A DNA stretch of 32,000 nt from positions 307,017 to 339,016 of the forward strand of contig NW_008806285.1 of the NCBI RefSeq assembly GCF_000400465.1, read 5' to 3'. Position numbers and translations under genes: made by a program. The notes under the pieces are model-generated. The model was not told the origin of the DNA, ran no database searches, and saw only the letters and a program-made list of their open reading frames with translations. Positions within the stretch are counted from its first letter, which is position 1. The number at the start of each line of letters is the position of its first letter. This stretch comes from Wallemia ichthyophaga EXF-994 (Eukaryota > Fungi > Basidiomycota). This document shows positions 7,201 to 32,000 of the stretch, piece by piece.

Positions 7201-8276
7201 CCAGAAAGACGGGCGAGCCTCCAATCACTAATGCATTTAAAGACTCATCATTCAGACCCCCACAAGCCCAAACTGTCAAGAGGAATTTCGAAAACCTCAG
7301 GCACGCGCGGACGTAAGTCCTCACAGCTGTCAAGTTTGTATTGGAAACTGATAGATTGTTGATATTTAGACTTGAGTTTGAGGCGGGTGCACTACTAGAT
7401 GAGGTCTGTAGCAGACGTTTATATGACGCTAAAGCGCTACTGAATTTGTCGTATATTGCAGCCCAAGGAGTTTCGAGTAATGCGTGGATGGGTATTTTTT
7501 CTGTTTTCTGCCAATATAGTAAAACCTGTGCAACCGCTTGGCATTCAATGGCGGATGCATGATGGAATGAGTCGACAGGTGCACGTAGCTGCGACAAACT
7601 CTCGTTATAGTTTGCCAAACTCTCTTTTAGCCTGCCTGACATGAGAAAAAGATCGCCATAGAGCTTAGACTGTCTACCGTCGTTTTTGCGCCTCTCGCCT
7701 GCTGTTTCTGCAAACCAAGACAAAATGCTGCCGATGATATCAGCAATCAGGGTATTCAAGTAGAATGCGCTGTCTTCAACCAGCGCTAAATGAGAAGAAG
7801 GATTGTTAGCGGCTCTTTCACTGTCTCTAGGCTGGAATGCCCAGCAGCGCTGTATGGGTGGTTTGAGCGATGCAGGGAGCCCCACGATGGTGTGATTGAA
7901 CGCGTCGTTGGCTGTATCTAGAGAAGAATGCGAGGGACAGTCGACTACGCCAACCACAGCATGAAATTGGTCGCTGAACGCAACCTGTGCGTCGTTGATG
8001 ATGCTGTTAGGATTCGAGTGATAGTTGATGTGTATTGTGTGACTCGTCGGAGACAGCGGAGGAGGGTGAAATGCAGCTGTACAAATAGCGTCAGGTGTAC
8101 GTCTCTGTTGATCTCGAAGTCAACCCACAGAATCCTGGCACTTCAGATCCTTTCATCTGCTGGAAGCTGCTCAAAGCTTCTAAAGAGCTCTTGTAGACTG
8201 ATTTACGTATGGGCTTGATTGGCACGACTAATATATTCAAGCATCCCGGCTGGATGAATCTCTCGCCATCTTTCAT
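4280..8276 (-). CDS. TRS120: TRAPP II complex subunit Trs120 (TRAPPC9)
   Basis: Multi-exon gene covering ORFs 8091..8306, 6335..7957, 5701..6147 and 4280..5713. Motifs include NILVVPIKPIRKS, VVGVVDC, GDLFLMSGRLKESLANY, DIYCYGRVGC and LIVDIRNSFGTPFEV...VQPGSTARLVLP. Likely ATG at 8276 (MKDGERF). Confidence 0.85.
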
Positions 8277-8413
8277 CGCAGAGAGATAGTGGACGTCAAC
8301 ATCCAACAGAGATAGCAGAAATATTTTGTTGATAGTCGCGTTGAAATGTATGATTAGTCTGGCCAGACGCTCCTGTTATCGCTAGAAATCCCACCGAACC
8401 AGATGAACTAACC

Positions 8414-8502
8414 GTGCGCGTCGTGCGCGTGAATGTAGGCATTGTTAAGAAAAACACGCGATTAGGAAGAAACTAAATCATACTATCACCGGACATACGC
8501 GT
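8414..8502. promoter_or_regulatory. Cluster of MCB-like (ACGCGT/CGCG) elements in the TRS120/CENP-A divergent promoter
   Basis: GTGCGCGT at 8414 and 8423, ACGCGA at 8456 and a perfect ACGCGT at 8497, all 60-150 bp upstream of the CenH3 ATG. Confidence 0.4.
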
Positions 8503-8559
8503 CCCTTTACACATCACTTTCGCTTCGATCAATACCGTCATCATCAGTTGCTATCGAAA

Positions 8560-9184
8560 ATGGCTCGGATGAGAACAAAACCAAATGGCGAGAATGGCGC
8601 GGAAGCACGTGAGTGACATTATTTAATGTTTACGTTATTCTAAGGCCAACTAGCTGGCGATCCAGCTACTAATGGTAATCGCAATAGAGATCGCGACACG
8701 AGTGGTAGAGGCGGCCAGCAGTACGCAGAAAGGGGCGGAAAGAGTCTAAACGCCTACAAATCAACAGGAACCGGAAAAAGGCGGTACAAACCAGGTATGG
8801 CCGCGTTAAGAGAAATCAGAAAATACCAGAAGTCGACAGACTTGCTCATTCAAAAACTGCCTTTCTCTAGATTGGTATGGGCTATCTAAGAGAAATCTCC
8901 TCGCTAACAAAATCAAGGTTCGCGAGATACACGAAGAATTTCTTAACACAGGGTACAGATTGGAGGAATTTCCTGCGCGTTGGCAGTCTTCCGCGCTACT
9001 ATGCTTGCAGGAAGCTGCAGAAGCCTATCTTGTGCATCTGTTCGAGGACGCGTGGGTGTCACTAAACAAACAAAACGACGTCACTAACGACAATGATAGC
9101 TATCTATGTACAATACACGCAAAGAGAGTTACTTTAATGCAACAGGATATACGTCTCGCTCGGAGAATACGCGGGCAGCAATAA
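8560..9184 (+). CDS. CSE4: Centromeric histone H3 variant (CENP-A/Cse4)
   Basis: Three introns (8609-8644, ~8875-8917, 9052-9099) give MARMRTK...[105 protein letters not shown]. CenH3 hallmarks are a non-H3 N-tail, PFSRL instead of PFQRL, an extended loop 1 and RWQS. Confidence 0.9.
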
Positions 9185-9218
9185 TACAACATGTTTAAAG
9201 CATTCTAACGCATACATT

Positions 9219-10286
9219 TCATTTCCCGGCTTTGGCTCTGCGTTCGGCAAACCTCCTCTTGGCAGCGTCGATGGCAGACTCATCGTTACGTCTTTCGAGT
9301 GTCTTGGCTTGTTGGGTTTGTGTTGCAGATTTCTGCTGCTCTTCCTTCTCTTTCGTTAGGGACAACATCTGCTCCTCAACCATTTTACTGTGACGTTCTC
9401 TAATTGCAGCTTGTGAGGCGTCAGTACCCACTGCCTGTCTTTTGAATCCTGCTTCTTTGTTGTTTGAAGTTGGAAGAGATGGTCCTTGAGGAGCTCGCCT
9501 CTTCTTTCCTGCATTCAGACCCGCAGATAAAAGCTGGACTTTATCAACAGCCTGTCCTTCATCATCAATCTCAACATTGTTGCCTTTAGATTGAGCCTTC
9601 TTAAGCATTGAGTCTGAATCAATTTCAGTCTGCGAAGCAGGCGGCCGTATAACGTTTGATTTGTTTTCCTGTGCAGCTTTCATAGCAGCAGCATGCTCTT
9701 CCTCCTTATCGTCGAGTATACCGCGCATAAATGCTGATGCACCAGTTCCTCTGCCGTCTCTCTCCTTCTTTTCCCTGGCTTCTTCCTCTTCCTCCGCCAG
9801 TCTAATTTCCTCAAGAGTCTTCTTGTAGCCTTCGGTGACAAACTCTTCGGTGCCTTGATACTCATCACCTTCTCTTTCTCTAGTCTTTTGTATCATCTTC
9901 TCTTCAGCTCTACTTCTGTCGAGTTTGCGCTTTTCTGCAGCAACAGCCAATCCTTCAATGTATTTGGGTGCGCGTGTGCTGCTTTCTTTTTTCCGACTAG
10001 CCTCGACGGCCTCTCTGGCAGACTGCATCTGATCAAACACTTCGTCATACTCAAAAACACTATCGTCGAGCTTTTTGGCATCTTCCAGCTGCTTTGCTAT
10101 CCTCGAGCTGGTTGCTTGGGCAGCTTGGGCTACCATTCCAGTACCCTTACCACCACTGCTGCTGCTGCTGCTCTTGGCGGGTGGCTTGAACCCGGAATCA
10201 TCGTCGCTGTCATCGCTATCTTCCAGTATAGATTTTTTAGGCTTTTCCTTTGGCTGGTTGAGCCCACCACCTAGCTTGATATTCAT
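9219..10286 (-). CDS. Nuclear speckle splicing regulatory protein 1-like (NSRP1/CCDC55, DUF2040)
   Basis: Intronless 355-aa coiled-coil protein with DDSVFEYDEVFDQM, PKYIEGL and EEFVTEGYKK, ending AAKRRFAERR. Confidence 0.8.
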   Translation of the reverse strand: MNIKLGGGLNQPKEKPKKSILEDSDDSDDDSGFKPPAKSSSSSSGGKGTGMVAQAAQATSSRIAKQLEDAKKLDDSVFEYDEVFDQMQSAREAVEASRKKESSTRAPKYIEGLAVAAEKRKLDRSRAEEKMIQKTREREGDEYQGTEEFVTEGYKKTLEEIRLAEEEEEAREKKERDGRGTGASAFMRGILDDKEEEHAAAMKAAQENKSNVIRPPASQTEIDSDSMLKKAQSKGNNVEIDDEGQAVDKVQLLSAGLNAGKKRRAPQGPSLPTSNNKEAGFKRQAVGTDASQAAIRERHSKMVEEQMLSLTKEKEEQQKSATQTQQAKTLERRNDESAIDAAKRRFAERRAKAGK

Positions 10287-10318
10287 AGTCCTTCTTCAAG
10301 AAAACCGCCAACACTGCA

Positions 10319-10758
10319 ATGGGAAAACGCAAGGCAGCCAGGAAGCCAACGGGTCCGAAGAAGGACAAAACTACGCTGCCAAAAACATTCGAGGTGTGTT
10401 GTGAGCAGCTCCTCTGCCACGCTTACACGCTCAGTGTCTTTTCTGTAGTCGCAACGATGCGGTACAAGTAAAACTAGATCAGAAGAACGGCATGGGCTAT
10501 CTGAATTGCAAAGTCTGTAATATGAGATTCGAGTCGACTATAAATTGTAAGTTGTTGGGCGCAGAGCTATGGCCGTAAGCTCACCATCGACAGCGCTCAC
10601 TGCACCTGTTGATCTCTATCACGACTGGATTGTGAGTATCTCTGCCATGCTTTTGAACCTGCTCACGCTCGCAGGATGCTAACGATGAGGTCAACTTCCC
10701 TCAGCAAAAGAAAAAGAGAGTGGAAGATAGGCCACCAGCCAGCGACGAAGAAGATTAA
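10319..10758 (+). CDS. ELF1: Transcription elongation factor Elf1 (zinc ribbon)
   Basis: Not shown as one ORF in the track. Spliced over three introns it reads MGKRKAARKP...LPKTFE-CLFC...LNCKVC...LTAPVDLYHDWI-DANDE...SDEED*, with CxxC/CxxC and the DWID motif. Confidence 0.85.
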
Positions 10759-10840
10759 GTCATAAATTGAGAAGAAGAGTGTACACTAGCATCTTGTAGT
10801 TTGTATCAAAGAAGCATCGATTTCCATATTAAGCAACAAC

Positions 10841-11826
10841 TTAGAATCCATATACTTTGCTAGCGTTGCCGCGATTTGCTTTACCCTGTGAAATCTTCTC
10901 TTCTAGTTCCGTTCGTTTGTTAACAGCTTCAGATATGAGCGAACTGAGTTGACCACGGGCTCTAGCTCCTCTGCCTTGCGGTCCACTGACTTCGACGTGT
11001 TCCTGCGGCTTCTCAGCTCCCATTTGGGTTGGTCTCATCTGTTTCTGTATGTCCTTAGCATTCACATCCACTATATCCTTTCCTGATAATCCTTGCTTGC
11101 GCTTGCGTTCCTCCTCTTCCTCGGCCTCTACGTCAATACCCGCGTCTATCTGCCACTGACGTACTTTGGACTGATAGAAAGCAGGTTCATAAGATTCCCA
11201 TTCACCGCTTGGTTTCCGATAATAACCTGGATATGGATCGTAGGGTGTAGGATCAGGTGGGACGTAATCTGGTAATTCGGGTGCAACGCTCATCTTGATC
11301 GCGCTTTGTGCTTGTGTTCTTAGCGTTGACGGCTTCTTGAATGTGCTTGTGGATGCTGAGAAGTACTTGAGCTTAATTCGAGCACAATTGTACACTCACC
11401 ACCTAACGAGAAGATATCAACGGGTGCTGAATGTTTGGAATTCCTGCTTGTGCTCGTACTCGATAGATCGGCATCCTTATCTTGTGTTGCTTCTTTATTG
11501 TGAAACTGTTGCTGCTTCTGCTGCTGGACTTGCGCTTTCTTTGGTGCGGGTAGCATACCCAGCAGGCCACTCAGACTATTTCCATTCGAAGTGGAAGTAC
11601 TGGGCTGTGGCCTTTTGCTAGATTCACCAACTAGAGCAGCCACATCATCGTCTTCGCTCTGCTTGCTTCTCTTGGCACTATCGGACTTAATCTGGACGGG
11701 TGCTCTCTTTTGCCCAGTTGAAGGCTTTGGCAGAGAGCCAAAAAGACCGCCATTATTCCTTTGCTTCGGCTGCTCGACTTTCACGTCCTCCTCGTCACTG
11801 CTGCTGCCGTAGTCTCCAACTAGCAT
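10841..11826 (-). CDS. PRCC-like (MAD2B-interacting) proline-rich protein
   Basis: The N-terminus is MLVGDYGSSSDEED. The C-terminus is RARGQLSSLISEAVNKRTELEEKISQGKANRGNASKVYGF. One intron near 11370-11405 joins the two ORFs. Confidence 0.75.
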
Positions 11827-21897: not shown

Positions 21898-24529
21898 ATG
21901 GCCACACCAAGTTTGATTCCATTGGTGGATACAACACCGAGCAAAGATTTGTTGTTAAGCGCCGCAAGAATTACTCCTGTCCTAGTTCCATCTAGCAATC
22001 TCAGCAACACCGTCTCTACCATCCCAAAGTCATCCAGCTACTACGTCTTAGTAGCAGACGATGAGAGCTTAGACAGCGCCATTAGTTACCTCAATAACGG
22101 CGCATCAGCTATCTTCGCTTCTGTCGAATTGGCTGACAGATGTATCTCTGCTGGCGTCCCTTCAGAAAAGCTCTATGCGGTCTCTAGCAGCACTGATATT
22201 CCAGAGGATGTCCTCAAAGGCATCAAAGGTGCCCTTATCAAGATTTCTGGCGTAAATTCAGCCACCCAACTTCCGAAACCAAAGGTTACTCTCTACTTAG
22301 ACGAATCTAAGATTATCCCAACCGAGAAGACAGTTGCTTCCTTACACAAGAGCAATGCTGCGCTTGCGGTGCCACTATCTCAACTCACCAACGACGCCAC
22401 ATCCTCATCCAAGTTGAACATCACAAACGCATTCTTGGCACCAATCACGACCGATAGACCAGATGGTTTGTTCAGCACCATCGTGTCATCCTACCTTCAC
22501 GGTGGAAAGTCATTAGGATTGTGCTATTCATCAAAGGAGTCAATAGAAGAATCCGTCAGAACAGGCAGAGGTGTCTACCAATCTCGCAAACATGGATTAT
22601 GGCGCAAAGGAGAAACAAGTGGTGCTATCCAAGACGTCGTTAAGATCGACCTAGATTGCGACTCTGACTGTCTCAACTTTGAGGTCATTCAACATGGCGC
22701 TGGGTTCTGTCATTTGGACACGCCAACTTGCTTCGGTCAATTGAGCGGCTTAGCTGCTTTGGAAGAGACTCTTGTTTCACGCCACCGATCAGCACCCGAG
22801 GGTAGTTACACTAAGAGACTGTTCAACGATGAAACTCTTCTCAGATCAAAGATTATGGAGGAAGCTGATGAGCTATGTGCTGCAAAATCCCAAGAGGATG
22901 TTGCATTCGAGGCAGCCGATTTGATTTACTTTGCATTAACAAGATGTGTCAGCAAGGGTGTCAATCTCGCAGATATCGGTCATGCATTAGACAAAAAAGC
23001 TGCTAAAGTATCGAGACGACCAGGAAATGCTAAGCCTAAATATCTTGAGCAGGCTCAAGCTAAGATTACCCCAGCTCCTGCACCATCGACCACCCAACAA
23101 CCTCAACCAACATCATTTGGTAACGATTTGATTAGAATGCGCAAGACTAAGCTGGACGGAATTGCCGAAGAGGAGCGCCTGCAGTTGTTGCGTAGACCTG
23201 TATTGAACTCAGGCGCAATGATTGATCGTGTCAGACCAATCGTTGAAGGTGTTAGTACTAAAGGTGACAAGAGCTTGCTTGATTTCATTGCCAAGTTAGA
23301 CAAGGCAGACCTGAAGTCGCCTATTGCACGTGCGCCATTTGAGGAGCCAACAATCCAACAAGATGTCAAGGAAGCAATTGATATCGCTTATGAAAACGTA
23401 CGTAAATTCCATGTTGGTCAAGCAGAGAAGGAGCCTTTAGTCGTTGAAACCATGCCGGGTATCGTTTGTCAAAGGTTCGCTAGACCAATCAGCAGGGTTG
23501 GTCTGTATGTGCCAGGAGGTACAGCAATCTTGCCCTCCTCTGCTCTCATGTTGGGTGTACCAGCGCAAGTAGCAGGATGCAAGGAAATAGTATTGGCAAC
23601 TCCGCCAAAACCTGATGGCAGCATTGCACCAGAAGTACTCTACGTCGCAAAGAAGGTCGGCGCGTCTGCCATTCTCAAAGCAGGAGGTGCACAAGCCGTA
23701 GCAGCTCTCGCTTATGGTACAGAGACAGTGCCAAAGGTTGACAAGATTTTTGGTCCTGGTAATCAATGGGTTACCGCCGCTAAGATGTTCGTATCGACGG
23801 ATGCTGACGCTCAAGTCGCTATTGATATGCCTGCTGGTCCATCGGAAGTACTGGTTATTGCTGACAAGACAGCCAATGCTTCCTACGTTGCCAGTGACCT
23901 TCTTTCACAAGCTGAGCACGGTGTCGACAGTCAAGTTGTGCTGGTGACGATCGATCTCAGTGAGAAGGAGATAGATGACATTGAGAAAGAGGTTGAACAG
24001 CAAGCTAGAAAGCTGCCACGTGTCGATATCACCAGAATTTCGGTATCAAAGAGTTTAATCGTATCAACTAGTGACGTCAAATCCGCATTCGATTTCTCGA
24101 ATGATTACGCTCCTGAGCACCTCATTCTTCATATTGACAGTGCGTCTGAGAAGGTGCCGATGGTCGAAAATGCTGGTAGTGTGTTCGTTGGACAATACTC
24201 TCCAGAGAGGTAAGTGTTCCGGCTATACCTGAAGCCAGCTGACTTCGCTTATAGTTGCGGTGATTATGCATCTGGCACCAACCACACACTTCCAACAAAC
24301 GGGTTTGCTAGACAGTATAGTGGTGAATACAGTCAAATCTCTTATGAATCAGTCTAACACGAAAATAGGTGTAAACACTCTTTCATTCCAAAAGCACATT
24401 ACTTCACAAGAACTTACTAAGGAGGGATTAGATAAATTGGGGCCAGTTGTCGTAAAATTAGCTGAATGTGAAGGATTACGCGCGCACGCCAATGCCGTAC
24501 GAGTAAGACTCGGTATGCAATCACCATAA
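21898..24529 (+). CDS. HIS4: Trifunctional histidine biosynthesis protein (PRA-CH / PRA-PH / histidinol dehydrogenase)
   Basis: [23 protein letters not shown]...FCHL, SYTKRLF...[46 protein letters not shown]. Two introns near the 3' end restore [17 protein letters not shown]...SG-VNT. Confidence 0.95.
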
Positions 24530-24578: not shown

Positions 24579-25433
24579 TCAAAACTTATGCTCCTCCCCT
24601 ATTAAAAGTTCTAGCTCGTCCATCCGTTGCTCTACAGCCATTTTTGCAACTTTTGTTTGATCCGCCTTATCTTTCAATTTTTGGAGATAGTTCTCGTCTG
24701 GTACTCTATAGAACTTGAATCTCTCCCACCATTTGTGAGTGACTGGTTCTTCAGGTGCCGGTTGAGGTGGTCGTTCGACAATACGCATGTGGTTTTCTTT
24801 GTCTTCTTCTTCTCTGTCTCTCCTTTTCAGCAAATAATTAATCCGCTGCACTCGCACCTCGTTAGCTACTGCTTGGCCCGTCGAACAAACCAAGACTGCT
24901 GTTATCACACCCGGGATAACACCTGCTCTACCGCCTTGAAATTATTAGTTTGCTGTGTATTGTGTGATAATCACCCACGAAGACGATAATTCCAGGCACC
25001 TCCACCAAGTGCACCCGCCAACGCTGAGTCTGCCATCTTGAAAGTCCTTGTCGGTTTATCCTGGTTGACAGGTGCGTACTTGCGTAGCGATGGGGTAACA
25101 AGCCACTCCCTCAAACCTTTGAGATTGTTAAAGGTTTCTGCTGAGTAGTCGCAGACGTACTAAAGAAGACGAAGGACGTGAGAGCGACGTTCTTGGCCGT
25201 ATTGAGACCTCTATCAAGAGCGTTTAGCAACATCGTTAGTCGTGCCTGCTACTCACAAATCCAACCCGTCGATTCCTTTCTGTGAGCCAGTCGCACCAGC
25301 GAGAAGACCTCCTCCGAGTGCTCCACCAAAAATCAGCCAGTGGTCCGATAAGCACATAGATAAACTCACTAAATCCAGCTGTGTTTATAAATATGTTCTG
25401 AGCTGCTTCTGTATCTGCTGGCCAGCTATCCAT
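24579..25433 (-). CDS. Small multi-exon membrane protein, Tim17/Tim22/Tim23-like
   Basis: Spliced over about four introns it gives Gly-rich TM segments: LGGGLLAGATG, AKNVALTSFVFFSLRE, DSALAGALGGG and GRAGVIPGVITAVLVCSTGQ, then a coiled-coil tail. The start (MDSWPAD, 25433) is tentative. Confidence 0.5.
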
Positions 25434-27269
25434 AGTAGACGAAGTATTCTTATCAACGTGGTCAGAGTCAAGGATGTTCTCGTTCAGATTGACTGCTGAA
25501 CGAGAAATAACTTCTTTCTTTTGATTTTAATAAGCGTGAAGCAGCACAAGATATACAGTCATTAGATGTGGATGCTATCAATGAAGTCATTTGCAGCGCG
25601 ATGGATTGACTGTACAGGTTTAAGAGGAAGTTGCAGAAGCGTCAAAATCTTAAATAAATTATGCGTTTGATATAAATTGAAACACCTTAACAATCTTTCA
25701 AAAGCAGCGTCTCAATATGAAGGATTCTGGCTAAGAGAACCACAGGTATGTTGCAGGAAGGGTGATTTGATATCTACAAATATAAATCCTACTCATCATA
25801 ACTCTGCAATTCTAACGCAGCTTTAATCACCCCTCCTTCACATTATTTGAAATTTCGAAGTTAACTAGTCGGAAGCAAAATCCCCGATGTTAGACTTTTG
25901 ATGACCCCCTAATTTCTATACCTAAATATCTTTGAAGTTTGAAGCGAGGCGGAATAGCAATTTTTCTCGGGAGTCAAGTTTGATAGCTGTGGACGCCATG
26001 TGCCGTAAAACGTTTTACGCGTTTAAAGGGTGGTAAATTGTGATTATGGTTCCTTGCGATCTGTAAAAATAAAAATAATGTGCTCCAAACGATGAAGTGC
26101 GTGTGATCCTCATATCTATCCTATGGCGTGCTGCAGAATGATTTCGGACTGTTGCTTCCGAGCAGCGTACAGAGCGTGATTTGAAGCATCAAGGAAATAA
26201 ATCTGGCAAAATCATACTATCTTCCGCCAGAGCTATAAGTTAAGCCTTTTTATTTGGAGATCATAAAAAGTCGTAAATCATCCATTTGGGATGAGATAGG
26301 TGTTAGAGAATGTATGTTGAAGGATATGAGCAAAAGATTGAAATAGTGCTGTATTTGAGATCCTGAAAATGCTATGAAGTGATGTTGTTGCTAAAGTATT
26401 TGAATCGTCAGTAAATGACATCGCTGTGTTTGTCTTCTCACTTAGTGCGTCTTTCGCGGGGAAAATAAGCATATCTGATTCAATTCAATGGTTCAGAGTT
26501 TTGAAAGCGTCTGAAGGAACAAAATGATAATGAAAAGCTATTCAAACCACCCTTACATCCAATAAGAACATTCTGATGTCATTAGAGTTGTAGAGTTGAG
26601 TCCATTTGAGCGATTGTAGGGAGCAACGGAGAATATGGTTGTCAAGATACAACCATACACTGATATATATCTAGACACTTAATAATGTACAAGTTATGTG
26701 TTTCAATCTCCAATACGCATACATTTCATAACACTTTTGTGACTCAGCGGCGGTAAAGAAGTGGCAGTAAGCACTCAATCTGCGCCAAATTCGAGAACAC
26801 TGATGCTCTTCTCTATCTCCGCTTTACCAGTAAATGCTCCAATCGATATGAATCCTCAGTGCCTGTTGAGGTCGCTACTGTAGTTTCAATTCAGATCAAC
26901 GATTCCCAGCGAAATCCGTTTCTGGATATATCTGAAGACTAGCACTCGCTACCATCAGCTCAGCATTGAATTCATATTGTGCATGTGATATGTATCATTT
27001 TCATCTACCAAATACTACATTCATAAGGACATTATATTTACATTTGCTTGATTCCCGGCAATCCGAGCGATGGGAATCCGTAAGCAATCTTCAACTGCTC
27101 TGGCGTCCAGCCAAAGATCTTGCCGTTGCTAACGATTCCGTAGTTTACTCTCGATTGCGTTACGTATAATTTTCGCTATCATGGTCGAGTCACTAATCAT
27201 GTCATCCACCAATAAACTTCTTGGTTGGTTACCATCAAAATTTAACCGAGTTTAATGTTTTAGAGGAGA

Positions 27270-28545
27270 ATGTCAAGCAATCTTTCAAGTTCTCTACTAA
27301 GCTCTCACCTCAGCCGCTCACTCAGGAAGCGTACAATGAACATAATACCTTCGTGGTTCGCTGTAACGATGGGGACTGGGATTCTTTCAATCCTGCTATT
27401 TAACTCACCTTACCAATTCAATGGCCTGCACGTAATAGCCGGCGTGATATTCGCCATTAACATCATCGTATTTGTTGTGTTACTGATATTTACTATACTC
27501 CGATACGCTATTTGGCCATCGCTGCTCCCACTGATGCTCACACACCCCGTCAACCTTTTTTTGGGGACGTTTCCAATGGGATTAGATACGCTGATTACAA
27601 TGATTGTCAACTCTCTAGTCCCCCGATATGGTTACAACTACGTCTTACTAGCCTATGTGCTGTGGTATATCAGCGTTGCCATTTCAATAATCACCTGTAT
27701 AGGTATTCCTTTTATTCAGATGAGCAGGCAGAACGTCGAAAATAGACAGATATTCGCGACTGCACTTCTACCCACCGTCAGTACAATAGTCGCAGCGTCT
27801 ACAGGTGCTTCTGTGGCGACTGTCCTCCCAGACTCACAGGCTAGGATCACTATTGTCATTTCATACATCCTCTTAGGCATGGGACTGCCAATATCCGTAC
27901 TCCTCATGGCTAATTACAGTTACAGACTTATCCTATTCAAGTTACCCCAGCCTGCTTTCATTAGCTCGACCTTTATCACTATAGGGCCATGCGGGCAGTC
28001 TGCATATGCCATCCTCAAGCTGAGCAGCGATGTTAATATGCTTATCTCAAAAACAGGTCTGGTTCCATTCACGGGTGTCAGAGATGAACAAGCTGCGAGA
28101 CTAGCGGGTATTGCGCTACAAACAGTATCCATTCCGATGGCTTTGTTTATCTGGGGATTCGGCGTGCTTTGGTTCTTCTTCGCTGTGATATCCTTCGCTG
28201 ATACATGGGCAGCTAAGAAAATACCTTTGAATCTGTCTCTCTGGGCATGCACGTGGGTGTATCCGTTGTCGAAAAAATCCTTGACTTACCTGTCTCAGCT
28301 TCCCTATCGGCACGCTGGCCTTGTCTGCTCAAGAGCTGGGCAAGGAGATGGACTCAACAGGGATGAAAGTCGTCGGTACTATCCTGATGATGCTCTTGTT
28401 GATAATTTGGCTGCTTCTTTTTCCAGTGACTCTTTACTTCAGCGTCATTAAGGATTCTTGGTTCACTAGCCCGTGTCTGTCGGAAGTCGGTGGCCAGCCG
28501 CCTTCATTTGAGGAGGTTGACTTTATCAAGAACCGCAAGTATTGA
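27270..28545 (+). CDS. SSU1: TDT/SLAC1-family transporter, Ssu1 sulfite-efflux-like, copy 1
   Basis: PSWFAVTMGTGILSILL, LFLGTFPMGLDT, ALLPTVSTIVAASTG, FITIGPCGQ; about 10 TMs. A 46-nt intron (28253-28298) restores WACT-FPIGTLAL and the C-terminus in ORF 28321..28545. The substrate (sulfite versus dicarboxylate) is not provable from sequence. Confidence 0.8.
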
Positions 28546-28658
28546 ACGAATATAGATATGTTTTATAGAATCAAAGCCAGGATGAGATTGTATGATGTAA
28601 TGTATTTAATTTATTTTCCCTAATTTTTTTCACTGTCTTCTTATCGGGTGCTAAGAGG

Positions 28659-28982
28659 ATGGGCAGGAATAAGCTCGATTCTGGCTGGAAAGGACGCCAG
28701 CAGAAGCAGTCTGAGGATTAGAAGCCTAACAATGATCTTAAGGGGGGCTATAAGAAGAACTTTAAGAAGGACAATAAGAATGACTCTAACCACTCAAGTA
28801 AACACGACAGAGGCTACAAAAACCACAGCAAGTCACATAGAAAGTCATCTGTTTCTCATAAACCAGTCACAGATGCAACCGCAAACGGCCAGGGTCAGTT
28901 GCATCCTTCATGAGCAGTCAAGAAAGCACAGGCGGAAACCATAGCAAATGCGCCAACGCGCACCAAAATTACATTCGAATAG
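28659..28982 (+). pseudogene. Decayed coding-like fragment (K/N/D/H-rich) with two internal stops; repeated at 31469..31792
   Basis: The frame from ATG 28659 reads MGRNKLDSGWKGRQQKQSED*KPNNDLKGGYKKNFKKDNKND...QLHPS*AVKKAQAETIANAPTRTKITFE*, with internal TAG at 28719 and TGA at 28911. Confidence 0.35.
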
Positions 28983-28999
28983 ACAAACTATAAATACAT

Positions 29000-29992
29000 T
29001 TAACTTATTGTGCCTGCATGATACGCGGATTTTGTTGTGATTGGAATGCGCATTCGACTAACGCCATCCTCGTCAGCGGGGGGCAAGCGACCACCTCGAA
29101 TATTGAACTGAATAGCAGGATGAAGGAGTTTTGGTGTGTTGAGAGAACTATCTTTCTCCATTCTGAATTGAGCAAAGTGGTCCATCTTGATATGATCATT
29201 GAGAAGCAGCTGATCTGCGACGGTAGTTGAGCAGCTCACCTGCTTACCATCACCTGGATAATCATGACCGACGAAAAGCTTGGTGTCACCAGCCAGACCC
29301 ATCAGCCTATCGATGGAAGACTTCAGCTGGGACGCTACACCGCCTGGAAAATCCGCTCTAGCGGTGTGAGTGGGGGCCAAAAATATGGAGTCGCCGGTGA
29401 AGACGTGTCCTCCGAACATATAACCAACATGGTCAGGCGTATGACCCGGAAGATGGATGACGTTGCCTGAGCAATCACCCAGCGAGATGGTCTCTCCATC
29501 ATCAAGCAGTCCATCGAAGCTACCTTGCAGAGAATCGAGAGAAAGGTTGTATCTTGGTCCGAAAGTGCGCTGCACGTCCACTATCCGCTTCCCAATGCTA
29601 ACGGGTGCGTGGAGGTGGTGCCTCAGGTAACGCGCTGCAGTGAGGTGGTCTGCATGTGCATGTGTCTCCAAAATATGGCGTACTTCTAATTTGCTCGTGG
29701 ATATGTGCGCTAGTAGTCCATCGGCACTCTGCGTACTCACATGCCCACTATTGCTGTCATAATCGAGCACTGGGTCTATCACCGCGGCTTGCAGTGTTCT
29801 AGGACAGTGCAGCACGTACGTCCATGTCGAACTGTCCTTATCGTAGAACGTCTGGGTTGTGGGTGTGTTGGCAGCTACATGCGTACGGAATGGCGGGGTT
29901 GGAGTAACTGCAGCAGTACTTTGATGTCTAATACCACCTTTAATCCCACCAGCTACTTTCCAATTATGATTACGTATAATTTTCGCTATCAT
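29000..29992 (-). CDS. Persulfide (sulfur) dioxygenase-like metallo-beta-lactamase, ETHE1/Blh family, with a putative mitochondrial presequence
   Basis: Intronless. Motifs: STWTYV, AAVIDPVLDYD, ILETHAHADHLTAA (HxHxDH), LPGHTPDH, FTGDSIF, TARADFPGG, LFVGHDY and PKLLHPAIQFNIRGGRLP. In-frame ATGs lie at 30010 and 29992; MIAKIIRNHNWK...IRHQST is basic and has no acidic residues. Confidence 0.85.
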   Translation of the reverse strand: MIAKIIRNHNWKVAGGIKGGIRHQSTAAVTPTPPFRTHVAANTPTTQTFYDKDSSTWTYVLHCPRTLQAAVIDPVLDYDSNSGHVSTQSADGLLAHISTSKLEVRHILETHAHADHLTAARYLRHHLHAPVSIGKRIVDVQRTFGPRYNLSLDSLQGSFDGLLDDGETISLGDCSGNVIHLPGHTPDHVGYMFGGHVFTGDSIFLAPTHTARADFPGGVASQLKSSIDRLMGLAGDTKLFVGHDYPGDGKQVSCSTTVADQLLLNDHIKMDHFAQFRMEKDSSLNTPKLLHPAIQFNIRGGRLPPADEDGVSRMRIPITTKSAYHAGTIS

Positions 29993-30079
29993 GGTCGAGT
30001 CACTAATCATGTCATCCACCAATAAACTTCTTGGTTGGTTACCATCAAAATTTAACCGAGTTTAATGTTTTAGAGGAGA

Positions 30080-31355
30080 ATGTCAAGCAATCTTTCAAGT
30101 TCTCTACTAAGCTCTCACCTCAGCCGCTCACTCAGGAAGCGTACAATGAACATAATACCTTCGTGGTTCGCTGTAACGATGGGGACTGGGATTCTTTCAA
30201 TCCTGCTATTTAACTCACCTTACCAATTCAATGGCCTGCACGTAATAGCCGGCGTGATATTCGCCATTAACATCATCGTATTTGTTGTGTTACTGATATT
30301 TACTATACTCCGATACGCTATTTGGCCATCGCTGCTCCCACTGATGCTCACACACCCCGTCAACCTTTTTTTGGGGACGTTTCCAATGGGATTAGATACG
30401 CTGATTACAATGATTGTCAACTCTCTAGTCCCCCGATATGGTTACAACTACGTCTTACTAGCCTATGTGCTGTGGTATATCAGCGTTGCCATTTCAATAA
30501 TCACCTGTATAGGTATTCCTTTTATTCAGATGAGCAGGCAGAACGTCGAAAATAGACAGATATTCGCGACTGCACTTCTACCCACCGTCAGTACAATAGT
30601 CGCAGCGTCTACAGGTGCTTCTGTGGCGAATGTCCTCCCAGACTCACAGGCTAGGATCACTATTGTCATTTCATACATCCTCTTAGGCATGGGACTGCCA
30701 ATATCCGTACTCCTCATGGCTAATTACAGTTACAGACTTATCCTATTCAAGTTACCCCAGCCTGCTTTCATTAGCTCGACCTTTATCACTATAGGGCCAT
30801 GCGGGCAGTCTGCATATGCCATCCTCAAGCTGAGCAGCGATGTTAATATGCTTATCTCAAAAACAGGTCTGGTTCCATTCACGGGTGTCAGAGATGAACA
30901 AGCTGCGAGACTAGCGGGTATTGCGCTACAAACAGTATCCATTCCGATGGCTTTGTTTATCTGGGGATTCGGCGTGCTTTGGTTCTTCTTCGCTGTGATA
31001 TCCTTCGCTGATACATGGGCAGCTAAGAAAATACCTTTGAATCTGTCTCTCTGGGCATGCACGTGGGTGTATCCGTTGTCGAAAAAATCCTTGACTTACC
31101 TGTCTCAGCTTCCCTATCGGCACGCTGGCCTTGTCTGCTCAAGAGCTGGGCAAGGAGATGGACTCAACAGGGATGAAAGTCGTCGGTACTATCCTGATGA
31201 TGCTCTTGTTGATAATTTGGCTGCTTCTTTTTCCAGTGACTCTTTACTTCAGCGTCATTAAGGATTCTTGGTTCACTAGCCCGTGTCTGTCGGAAGTCGG
31301 TGGCCAGCCGCCTTCATTTGAGGAGGTTGACTTTATCAAGAACCGCAAGTATTGA
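30080..31355 (+). CDS. SSU1: TDT/SLAC1-family transporter, Ssu1-like, copy 2
   Basis: Identical to copy 1 except for Thr->Asn (VATVLP -> VANVLP, A30630). Intron at 31063-31108. Confidence 0.8.
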
Positions 31356-31809
31356 ACGAATATAGATATGTTTTATAGAATCAAAGCCAGGATGAGATTG
31401 TATGATGTAATGTATTTAATTTATTTTCCCTAATTTTTTTCACTGTCTTCTTATCGGGTGCTAAGAGGATGGGCAGGAATAAGCTCGATTCTGGCTGGAA
31501 AGGACGCCAGCAGAAGCAGTCTGAGGATTAGAAGCCTAACAATGATCTTAAGGGGGGCTATAAGAAGAACTTTAAGAAGGACAATAAGAATGACTCTAAC
31601 CACTCAAGTAAACACGACAGAGGCTACAAAAACCACAGCAAGTCACATAGAAAGTCATCTGTTTCTCATAAACCAGTCACAGATGCAACCGCAAACGGCC
31701 AGGGTCAGTTGCATCCTTCATGAGCAGTCAAGAAAGCACAGGCGGAAACCATAGCAAATGCGCCAACGCGCACCAAAATTACATTCGAATAGACAAACTA
31801 TAAATACAT

Positions 31810-32000
31810 TTAACTTATTGTGCCTGCATGATACGCGGATTTTGTTGTGATTGGAATGCGCATTCGACTAACGCCATCCTCGTCAGCGGGGGGCAAGCGA
31901 CCACCTCGAATATTGAACTGAATAGCAGGATGAAGGAGTTTTGGTGTGTTGAGAGAACTATCTTTCTCCATTCTGAATTGAGCAAAGTGGTCCATCTTGA
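31810..32000 (-). CDS. Persulfide dioxygenase-like gene, copy 2 (3' end only; the rest lies beyond the window)
   Basis: Identical to 29000..29190 (…PKLLHPAIQFNIRGGRLPPADEDGVSRMRIPITTKSAYHAGTIS*). Confidence 0.85.
   Translation of the reverse strand, partial: KMDHFAQFRMEKDSSLNTPKLLHPAIQFNIRGGRLPPADEDGVSRMRIPITTKSAYHAGTIS

Follow-up and report, generated by a model that had tools for sequence, protein, structure and literature searches.

Type II persulfide dioxygenases (PDOs) are predominantly proteobacterial (PMC12856154), and in bacterial sulfide-oxidation clusters a PDO gene lies beside the gene of an exporter for its product. Sulfide oxidation in fungi is poorly described. Cysteine dioxygenase and Ssu1 of Candida albicans form a fungal pair of sulfite producer and exporter (10.1101/2025.03.13.642974). 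In this study, we analysed a window of 32,000 nt from the basidiomycete Wallemia ichthyophaga EXF-994 (assembly GCA_000400465.1), whose position 32000 is the last base of scaffold KE007235.1 (339,016 bp). The window ends in a tandem array in which a gene for a metallo-beta-lactamase (MBL), a candidate PDO, stands head-to-head with a gene for a transporter of the TDT/SLAC1 family. All coordinates are window positions unless a comparison locus is named.

The original prediction, made from the letters of the window without database searches, had read this pair as a PDO and an Ssu1-like sulfite exporter and had supposed that no fungal PDO-SSU1 cluster was described. Our literature search agreed with the latter point. 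In the library searched, it returned no paper on a link between a fungal PDO and a sulfite pump, on a fungal PDO, or on the Wallemia locus or sulfite efflux in Wallemia; the nearest match was an algal genomics paper in which PDO and SSU1-type families are listed separately. The region of the array is a tandemly repeated, paralogous copy, about 5% diverged, of a native W. ichthyophaga locus (YVC1-like, TDT, MBL, BUD22). We favour the reading of the pair as a producer-plus-exporter module for persulfide detoxification, to which we give, on sequence evidence, a probability of about 0.45.

Identity of the metallo-beta-lactamase

The MBL carries the motif HxHxDH as H111-A-H113-A-D115-H116, and its Pfam match is the generic family PF00753 (E 1e-11). 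Its best matches among solved structures were type II PDOs, namely PaPDO (9g8t, E 6e-66), PpPDO (4ysk, E 3e-60) and 4efz. The type II structures matched at E 6e-66 to 5e-59 over MBL residues 44-321, the C-terminal region included. Type I (ETHE1) structures (4ysb, 4chl and 2gcu) matched at E 1e-24 to 1e-11, PDO-rhodanese fusions at 1e-7 to 1e-8 and glyoxalase II at 1e-9 or weaker. The MBL was 42% identical to the PDOs of Pseudomonas aeruginosa and P. putida over about 275 residues.

PaPDO is a demonstrated dioxygenase of glutathione persulfide (GSSH) with the 2-His-1-Asp iron ligands H71, H146 and D163, and glutathione (GSH) is bound in PpPDO by three arginines, R174, R244 and R247 (PMC12856154). 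The equivalents of the iron ligands in the MBL are H111, H184 and D201, which were invariant in 15 fungal and bacterial homologues. At the positions of the GSH-binding arginines the MBL has R212 and R277, both invariant in 15 sequences, and K280; the third position is arginine in W. mellicola. H243 is also among the residues listed for the MBL. The N-terminal 48 residues contain six K/R and no D/E, and in the four Wallemia MBLs the N-terminus is extended by 38-48 residues, of which 5-7 are K/R and 0-1 are D/E. In these features the extension would seem to resemble a mitochondrial presequence.

The neighbours of related genes were examined at 80 metagenomic loci of PDO relatives. A TauE gene was present within 3 kb at 14 of them, in accordance with the earlier expectation that bacterial pdo loci often carry TauE. 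An ArsR regulator was found at 12 loci, rhodanese-YgaP at 9 and SQR at no fewer than 8. A YeeE-type sulfur transporter was found at 9 of the 80 loci and a further YeeE-like family at 4. In Sporobolomyces salmonicolor the PDO orthologue is head-to-head with an SQR gene (human SQOR match E 5e-30; locus L013, 5641-7685 on the minus strand and 8001-9302 on the plus strand). This is a eukaryotic SQR-PDO gene pair.

The ranking of the structure matches, the conserved ligands and arginines, and the SQR, TauE and rhodanese contexts of the relatives support the identity of the MBL as a PDO. It is very probably of type II and not of the ETHE1 type I. The first description of the gene as an ETHE1/Blh-type MBL was therefore right about the PDO lineage; the structure matches and ligands place it in another type.

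Family and relatives of the transporter

Judged by its profile match, the transporter belongs to the TDT/SLAC1 family: PF03595 was matched at full length (E 1e-79; residues 26-372, profile positions 3-330 of 331). No solved structure matched it at E 0.01 or better. Removal of the 46-nt intron restores the reading frame and rebuilds the family motif LWACTFPIGT. The open reading frame 27270-28451, on which the original prediction had relied, covers exon 1 correctly, and its remainder is read-through into the intron.

Transporter trees were built by neighbor-joining with 100 bootstraps, one with 65 sequences and then one with 127, the latter including 97 representatives from an exhaustive search. 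The Ssu1 orthologues in the trees were taken from the database (S. kudriavzevii, S. uvarum, Lodderomyces and S. octosporus). The S. cerevisiae Ssu1 sequence used for pairwise comparison was approximate: it matched no database entry exactly, had 87% identity to Ssu1p of S. kudriavzevii and was kept out of the trees. In the 65-sequence tree, the Wallemia protein fell among sequences of further basidiomycetes, and Mae1 was its sister at weak support (37%), a relation that was lost with denser sampling. The sole grouping in the 127-sequence tree joined Wallemia, Tilletia, Meredithblackwellia and Microbotryomycetes (52-58%).

The best relative outside Wallemia was Ustilago trichophora SPO29983.1, with 41% identity over 393 aa. 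Its C-terminus ASPSR and an internal MGFGIT match the primers for cloning Ustilago ssu1 (UT_05271). UtSsu1 and the Wallemia protein fell in a shared basidiomycete group with 4% support. U. trichophora has two nearly identical Ssu1-type TDT copies on different contigs (659,599 and 682,140 bp), another TDT duplication in a basidiomycete. According to the algal genomics paper, fungal SSU1 and MAE1 functions are not separable by phylogeny. The label "Ssu1" is an automatic database name, and on the present alignments and trees orthology with Ssu1 or Mae1 is not established. The naming of the protein as Ssu1/TDT-family thus stands for TDT membership; an Ssu1-like protein, in the narrower sense, is not established with 24% identity to Ssu1, 25% to Mae1 and unsupported trees.

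The closest bacterial relatives (26-38% identity) are encoded about 107 bp upstream of a same-strand SorA orthologue (PDB 2blf, E 7e-116) in 18 Sphingomonadaceae loci. A cytochrome c gene then follows sorA in 12 loci (representative locus L056, 7965-10467). In one Phenylobacterium and one Caulobacteraceae metagenome-assembled genome (MAG), TDT is adjoined or overlapped by a gene of the SorA type. Among the Rhodobacterales and Hyphomicrobiales, genes of the sulfite-oxidase family lie 0.3-4 kb from TDT in Paracoccus, Falsirhodobacter, Sulfitobacter/Roseobacter, Methylopila and Aureimonas. No link between TDT and sorA was found in 44 Pseudomonas loci, which have conserved neighbours of their own. 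By analogy, these arrangements suggest that the alphaproteobacterial TDT subfamily next to sorA moves sulfite. For the Wallemia transporter itself, the relatives leave sulfite with an even chance of being the ion carried.

The divergent pair as a candidate module

The PDO-TDT pairing was found in four Wallemia species. Four other W. ichthyophaga strains, W. hederae, W. mellicola and a Wallemia sp. have the native gene order YVC1-like, TDT, MBL (opposite strand), BUD22 and GDI. TDT and MBL are head-to-head in the four species with an ATG-to-ATG spacing of 87-280 bp. In the array 87 bp separate the MBL ATG (29992) from the transporter ATG (30080), exactly as was first proposed. Because the same layout is present at the native loci of other strains and species, the head-to-head layout is ancestral to the genus. 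The suspicion that it was an artefact of duplication, raised since the repeat boundary falls within the MBL gene, was rejected on the same ground.

The spacer contains a match with one mismatch to the Neurospora crassa CYS-3 site ATGRYRYCAT, and in W. mellicola the match is perfect at a comparable position. Three Wallemia species have an ATGTCAT core of this kind between the TDT and PDO genes; at locus L005 its distance upstream from the MBL ATG (6001) is about 40 bp. No enrichment of the CYS-3 site was found across the window (22 matches, 14 expected).

If the two genes form a module, the MBL would be a type II PDO that is imported into mitochondria. There it would oxidise GSSH with O2 to sulfite and GSH, the persulfide being supplied by SQR, sulfurtransferases or sulfane sulfur. 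The TDT protein would be an anion exporter of the plasma membrane with sulfite or bisulfite as its physiological substrate, and would carry off what is made by the enzyme whose gene lies 87 bp from its own. Both genes would be driven from one short common promoter region. The additional tandem copies would give a higher dosage of the two genes, with a presumed benefit to the cell.

Several observations weigh against this reading. An enzyme in the mitochondrion and an exporter in the plasma membrane are separated by two membranes. The whole neighbourhood is syntenic within Wallemia, with YVC1-like, BUD22 and GDI included, and coding sequence makes up about 72% of the genome. Because the block is syntenic and the genome compact, neither adjacency nor a short spacer counts for much. 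Neither the PDO gene of Trametes elegans nor that of Sporobolomyces had a TDT partner within 8 kb, and no PDO partner was present near the TDT gene of Tilletia horrida (8 kb) or Microbotryomycetes sp. JL221 (7.8-kb contig). A PDO-like MBL stood beside TDT at 1 of 80 bacterial TDT loci, and TDT at none of the 80 bacterial and metagenomic PDO loci. Among the 4 other fungal loci, the 80 TDT loci and the 80 PDO loci, no recurrence of the pairing in independent lineages was found apart from that one bacterial case. The survey of PDO-SSU1 adjacency that had been proposed thus gave a conserved divergent pair in Wallemia, which was not seen at the non-Wallemia fungal loci examined.

The fungal relatives of the transporter weigh against it as well. 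S. pombe Mae1 (P50537, the exact database entry) was 25% identical at 107 bits, and S. cerevisiae Ssu1, with the approximate query, 24% at 87 bits. The ascomycete Ssu1 clade (68% bootstrap) excluded the Wallemia protein in the 65-sequence tree, and the backbone of the 127-sequence tree had 0-9% support. Overexpression of Ustilago ssu1 UT_05271 raised the yield of malate (PMC5678829), a result on yield and not a transport assay. By analogy, the likeness to UtSsu1 indirectly favours a dicarboxylate role.

A single bacterial adjacency was observed, in a Gallionella MAG (locus L034, 2337-5078). There a LysR regulator, TDT and a PDO-like MBL truncated by the contig end lie in a row, the sole such adjacency among 160 prokaryotic and metagenomic loci.

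These points can also be read as a case for neighbours by descent only. The MBL would then be a PDO, the TDT protein would export C4-dicarboxylates (malate or succinate) or anions broadly without a link to the pathway, and the adjacency would reflect synteny in a compact genome. We regard this as the main rival, a serious though doubtful possibility. The closest studied relative of the transporter, Ustilago Ssu1, is linked to malate export, all four Wallemia proteins score higher to Mae1 than to Ssu1 by BLAST (again with the approximate query), and the pairing was confined to Wallemia in the fungal loci examined. The flanking YVC1-like, BUD22 and GDI genes share the synteny, and the bacterial PDO loci have TauE where none of the 80 has TDT. 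On the other side, it is unlikely that a chance neighbour should happen to produce just the ion that the family's best-known members export, an argument that we discounted since the pair was chosen for its interpretability. The closest bacterial TDTs are in sorA operons, and the Ustilago evidence, a yield after overexpression, is indirect.

Structure and origin of the array

Self-shift comparison showed that a unit of 2,810 bp is present in tandem across 27160-32000, in at least 1.72 copies, and that the array runs off the scaffold end. With a shift of 2,810 bases, identity extends from 27160 to 32000 with one mismatch (27820/30630) and no N. Each unit has one intact TDT/SLAC1 transporter gene and one intact MBL gene; the third element is a dead 3' piece of BUD22. 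The claim of only two intact genes per unit was confirmed by the two in-frame stops of this piece. The left edge at 27160 truncates an MBL copy after codon 7-8 and abuts non-native sequence on the HIS4 side. The features of the array are listed in Table 1.

Table 1. Features of the tandem array in W. ichthyophaga EXF-994 (window positions).
Feature	Position	Strand	Remarks
PDO stub at left array edge, first 7-8 codons (MIAKIIR), 23 nt	27160..27182	-	Periodicity begins exactly at 27160; homology to native locus L001 begins at 27154
Divergent intergenic region, copy 1, 87 bp	27183..27269		CYS-3-site match with 1 mismatch at 27196-27205
TDT/SLAC1-family anion transporter, copy 1, 409 aa	27270..28545	+	Exons 27270-28252 and 28299-28545; GT..AG intron 28253-28298
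Transporter 3' flank	28546..28647		Reaches tandem-duplication junction 28647/28648
BUD22 dead 3' fragment, 335 nt, last 111 codons	28648..28982	+	Two in-frame stops; about 10% diverged from native gene
Type II PDO homologue (MBL), 330 aa	29000..29992	-	PF00753
Divergent intergenic region, copy 2, 87 bp	29993..30079		CYS-3-like near-match at 30006-30015
TDT/SLAC1-family transporter, copy 2	30080..31355	+	Intron 31063-31108; T184N (30630) is the sole residue difference from copy 1
BUD22 3' fragment, copy 2	31458..31792	+	
Next PDO copy, C-terminal 62 codons	31810..32000	-	Truncated at scaffold end

The repeat unit corresponds to positions 8539-11345 of the native W. ichthyophaga locus L001. At the junction 28647/28648 the sequence passes from the 3' flank of TDT directly into the middle of BUD22, and the two sides share 1-2 nt of microhomology; such a junction is the signature of a non-homologous tandem duplication. 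TDT and MBL meet tail-to-tail only across this junction. The tail-to-tail contact noticed at first exists, then, as a by-product of the tandem duplication and not as part of the native arrangement.

EXF-994 also has a native copy, which lies at the start of scaffold KE007243.1 and begins mid-gene within the TDT 5' coding region (locus L009, 1-1001). This 11-kb native locus contains a run of 10 N, and the annotated native MBL EOQ99198.1 is a shortened model of 284 aa. Both scaffold breaks, at the array end and at the start of the native copy, fall within repeated sequence. The native copy of EXF-994 was 99.1-99.4% identical to the native loci of other strains and 94.9% identical to the array. 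The divergence between array and native sequence is about 5% over 2.8 kb. The best database matches of the array proteins were both from W. ichthyophaga (transporter 99% identity, MBL 95%).

No SQR gene was found within 10 kb of the native locus. A mitochondrial carrier gene of 287 aa lies about 6 kb from the native PDO (L001, 16750-17613). Dicarboxylate carriers also transport sulfite and thiosulfate.

To the left of the array, HIS4 occupies 21898-24529 and gives a spliced product of 846 aa (intron 24144-24234). An AT-rich stretch of 1.8 kb (25358-27159; GC about 0.39-0.43) adjoins the array on this side. It has no annotated gene, which is unusual for a genome that is about 72% coding, and no repeats or signs of mobile elements were found in it. 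Short tandem repeats with a period of 15-21 at 2286-2627 appear to be low-complexity coding sequence and are unrelated to the gene pair.

Age of the array copy and selection on its genes

Species-wide, single-nucleotide polymorphisms (SNPs) in W. ichthyophaga have a density of 0.13-0.40% (PMC6738226). The array-native divergence is about 5%, and by this comparison the array paralogue is far older than the sampled population. In contrast with this age, no array-type MBL was found among the annotated MBLs of the other strains.

Between array and native copies dS was 0.09-0.14. The dN/dS ratio was 0.15-0.17 for the MBL and 0.04-0.06 for TDT, with protein identities of 95% and 99%, respectively. 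When changes were polarised with outgroups, those in the MBL on the array lineage alone numbered 3 nonsynonymous and 6 synonymous, a departure from neutrality at p 0.008; in TDT there were 1 and 10, respectively (p 7e-6). The co-duplicated BUD22 piece has decayed, with about 10% divergence and two stops. Because dN/dS is low and the polarised changes are poor in nonsynonymous ones while the BUD22 piece decayed, these substitution patterns indicate that both array genes are kept functional under purifying selection.

The share of GC-to-AT substitutions was 79% on the array lineage and about one third on the native lineage, and the GC content was 0.464 in the array and 0.485 in the native copy (28648-31457 compared with the native loci). 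Mutation of the repeat of the kind caused by repeat-induced point mutation was considered and rejected: the GC-to-AT bias is present, but there is no preference for a CpA or CpG context and coding is preserved.

The native copies differ between strains far above the genome average (TDT dS 0.05 between L001 and L004, compared with the SNP density given above). The native MBL of locus L010 is nearer to the array type. Gene conversion between the paralogues may lie behind both the differences between native copies and the array-like MBL of L010.

Alternative readings of the array and of the enzyme

The array, or its attachment on the HIS4 side, could be an artefact of assembly, with no amplification in the genome. 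EXF-994 was assembled by SOAPdenovo (K=21) from 500-bp and 2-kb libraries, and a short-insert assembly of this kind is a caveat on the copy number and on the HIS4-side junction. The array is at a scaffold end, and the native copy is at the start of another scaffold, broken within the TDT gene and with a gap of 10 N. On its left side the array breaks off within a gene, at codon 8, and the lack of array-type MBLs in the annotations of other strains fits this reading as well. The array type, however, is about 5% different from the native type over 2.8 kb with a coherent pattern of selection, which argues for a distinct sequence and not for a mis-stitched native copy. The junction 28647/28648 and the copy-specific substitution 27820/30630 both lie in N-free sequence, and polarised substitutions are present on both lineages. 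We consider an artefact improbable.

Still less probable is that the transporter alone was the selected cargo of the duplication and that the array MBL was a passenger. The tighter constraint on TDT (omega 0.04-0.06, compared with 0.15-0.17 for the MBL) and its higher array-native protein identity (99% compared with 95%) are in its favour. The array MBL copy is intact, however, its 3 nonsynonymous and 6 synonymous array-lineage changes depart from neutrality, and the true passenger, the BUD22 piece, gained two stops.

Finally, the generic PF00753 as the only Pfam match and database names such as "Glyoxylase B2" or "Zn-dependent hydrolase" might suggest that the MBL is a glyoxalase II or another thioester or lactone hydrolase and not a PDO, which is very improbable given that type II PDOs match at least 40 orders of magnitude better than glyoxalase II structures, that the PDO ligand set and GSH-binding arginines are conserved, and that the relatives occur in SQR, TauE and rhodanese contexts.

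Implications and comparison with known systems

If the coupling of the two genes is true, eukaryotes would have in this pair an equivalent of bacterial pdo-tauE that relies on another family of exporters. The pair would further give a handle on the real substrates of basidiomycete "Ssu1/Mae1" proteins, which bears on sulfite tolerance and on production strains for organic acids. If the coupling is false, the pair is an ordinary one of known families within a segmental duplication. The tandem copy, diverged and maintained by selection, is in addition a neat example of how a gene pair is amplified in the very compact genome of an extremophile. W. ichthyophaga is the most halophilic known fungus. 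A stronger proposal would be that PDO and TDT form a co-regulated eukaryotic cassette in which TDT instead of TauE exports sulfite, and that the array of EXF-994 is a dosage adaptation to saltern brine rich in sulfide and sulfate; we think this unlikely.

The enzyme is closest to the type II PDOs with solved structures (PaPDO, 9G8T; PpPDO, 4YSK/4YSL). It shares with them 42% identity, the HxHxDH motif, the 2-His-1-Asp ligands and two of the three GSH-binding arginines, the third being lysine. It differs in being eukaryotic, in its basic N-terminal extension of 48 residues and in being known here from sequence.

The transporter has the PF03595 domain, TDT superfamily membership, a similar length and a full-length match in common with the ascomycete Ssu1 pumps. 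Unlike them, it is about 24% identical and outside the Ssu1 clade (68%) in the 65-sequence tree, with no support either way in the tree of 127. The Mae1-type carriers are of the same family (25% identity to S. pombe Mae1 and 41% to UtSsu1, the closest relative with functional data), but the grouping with Mae1 had 37% bootstrap and was gone with denser sampling. The alphaproteobacterial TDT-sorA(-cytochrome c) arrays hold the closest bacterial relatives of the fungal TDT group and are tied genomically to sulfite metabolism. Their partner SorA, a sulfite dehydrogenase, consumes sulfite, whereas the MBL would produce it.

At the level of the pair, the C. albicans system differs in its producer, which is cysteine dioxygenase and not a PDO. 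The same pairing of cysteine dioxygenase with Ssu1 is known from dermatophytes, and the genes of that pairing are co-regulated and are not known to be adjacent. The bacterial sulfide-oxidation clusters (sqr, pdo, rhodanese, TauE and an ArsR-type regulator) follow the same logic as the Wallemia locus, a PDO beside an exporter for its product. The exporter there is TauE, and in Wallemia it would be TDT, in a eukaryotic divergent pair that is not an operon and has no SQR at the locus. The pair, with its putative amplification, is best classed as a variant, specific to this lineage, of the known arrangement in which PDO and exporter genes are neighbours, and it is built from two known families.

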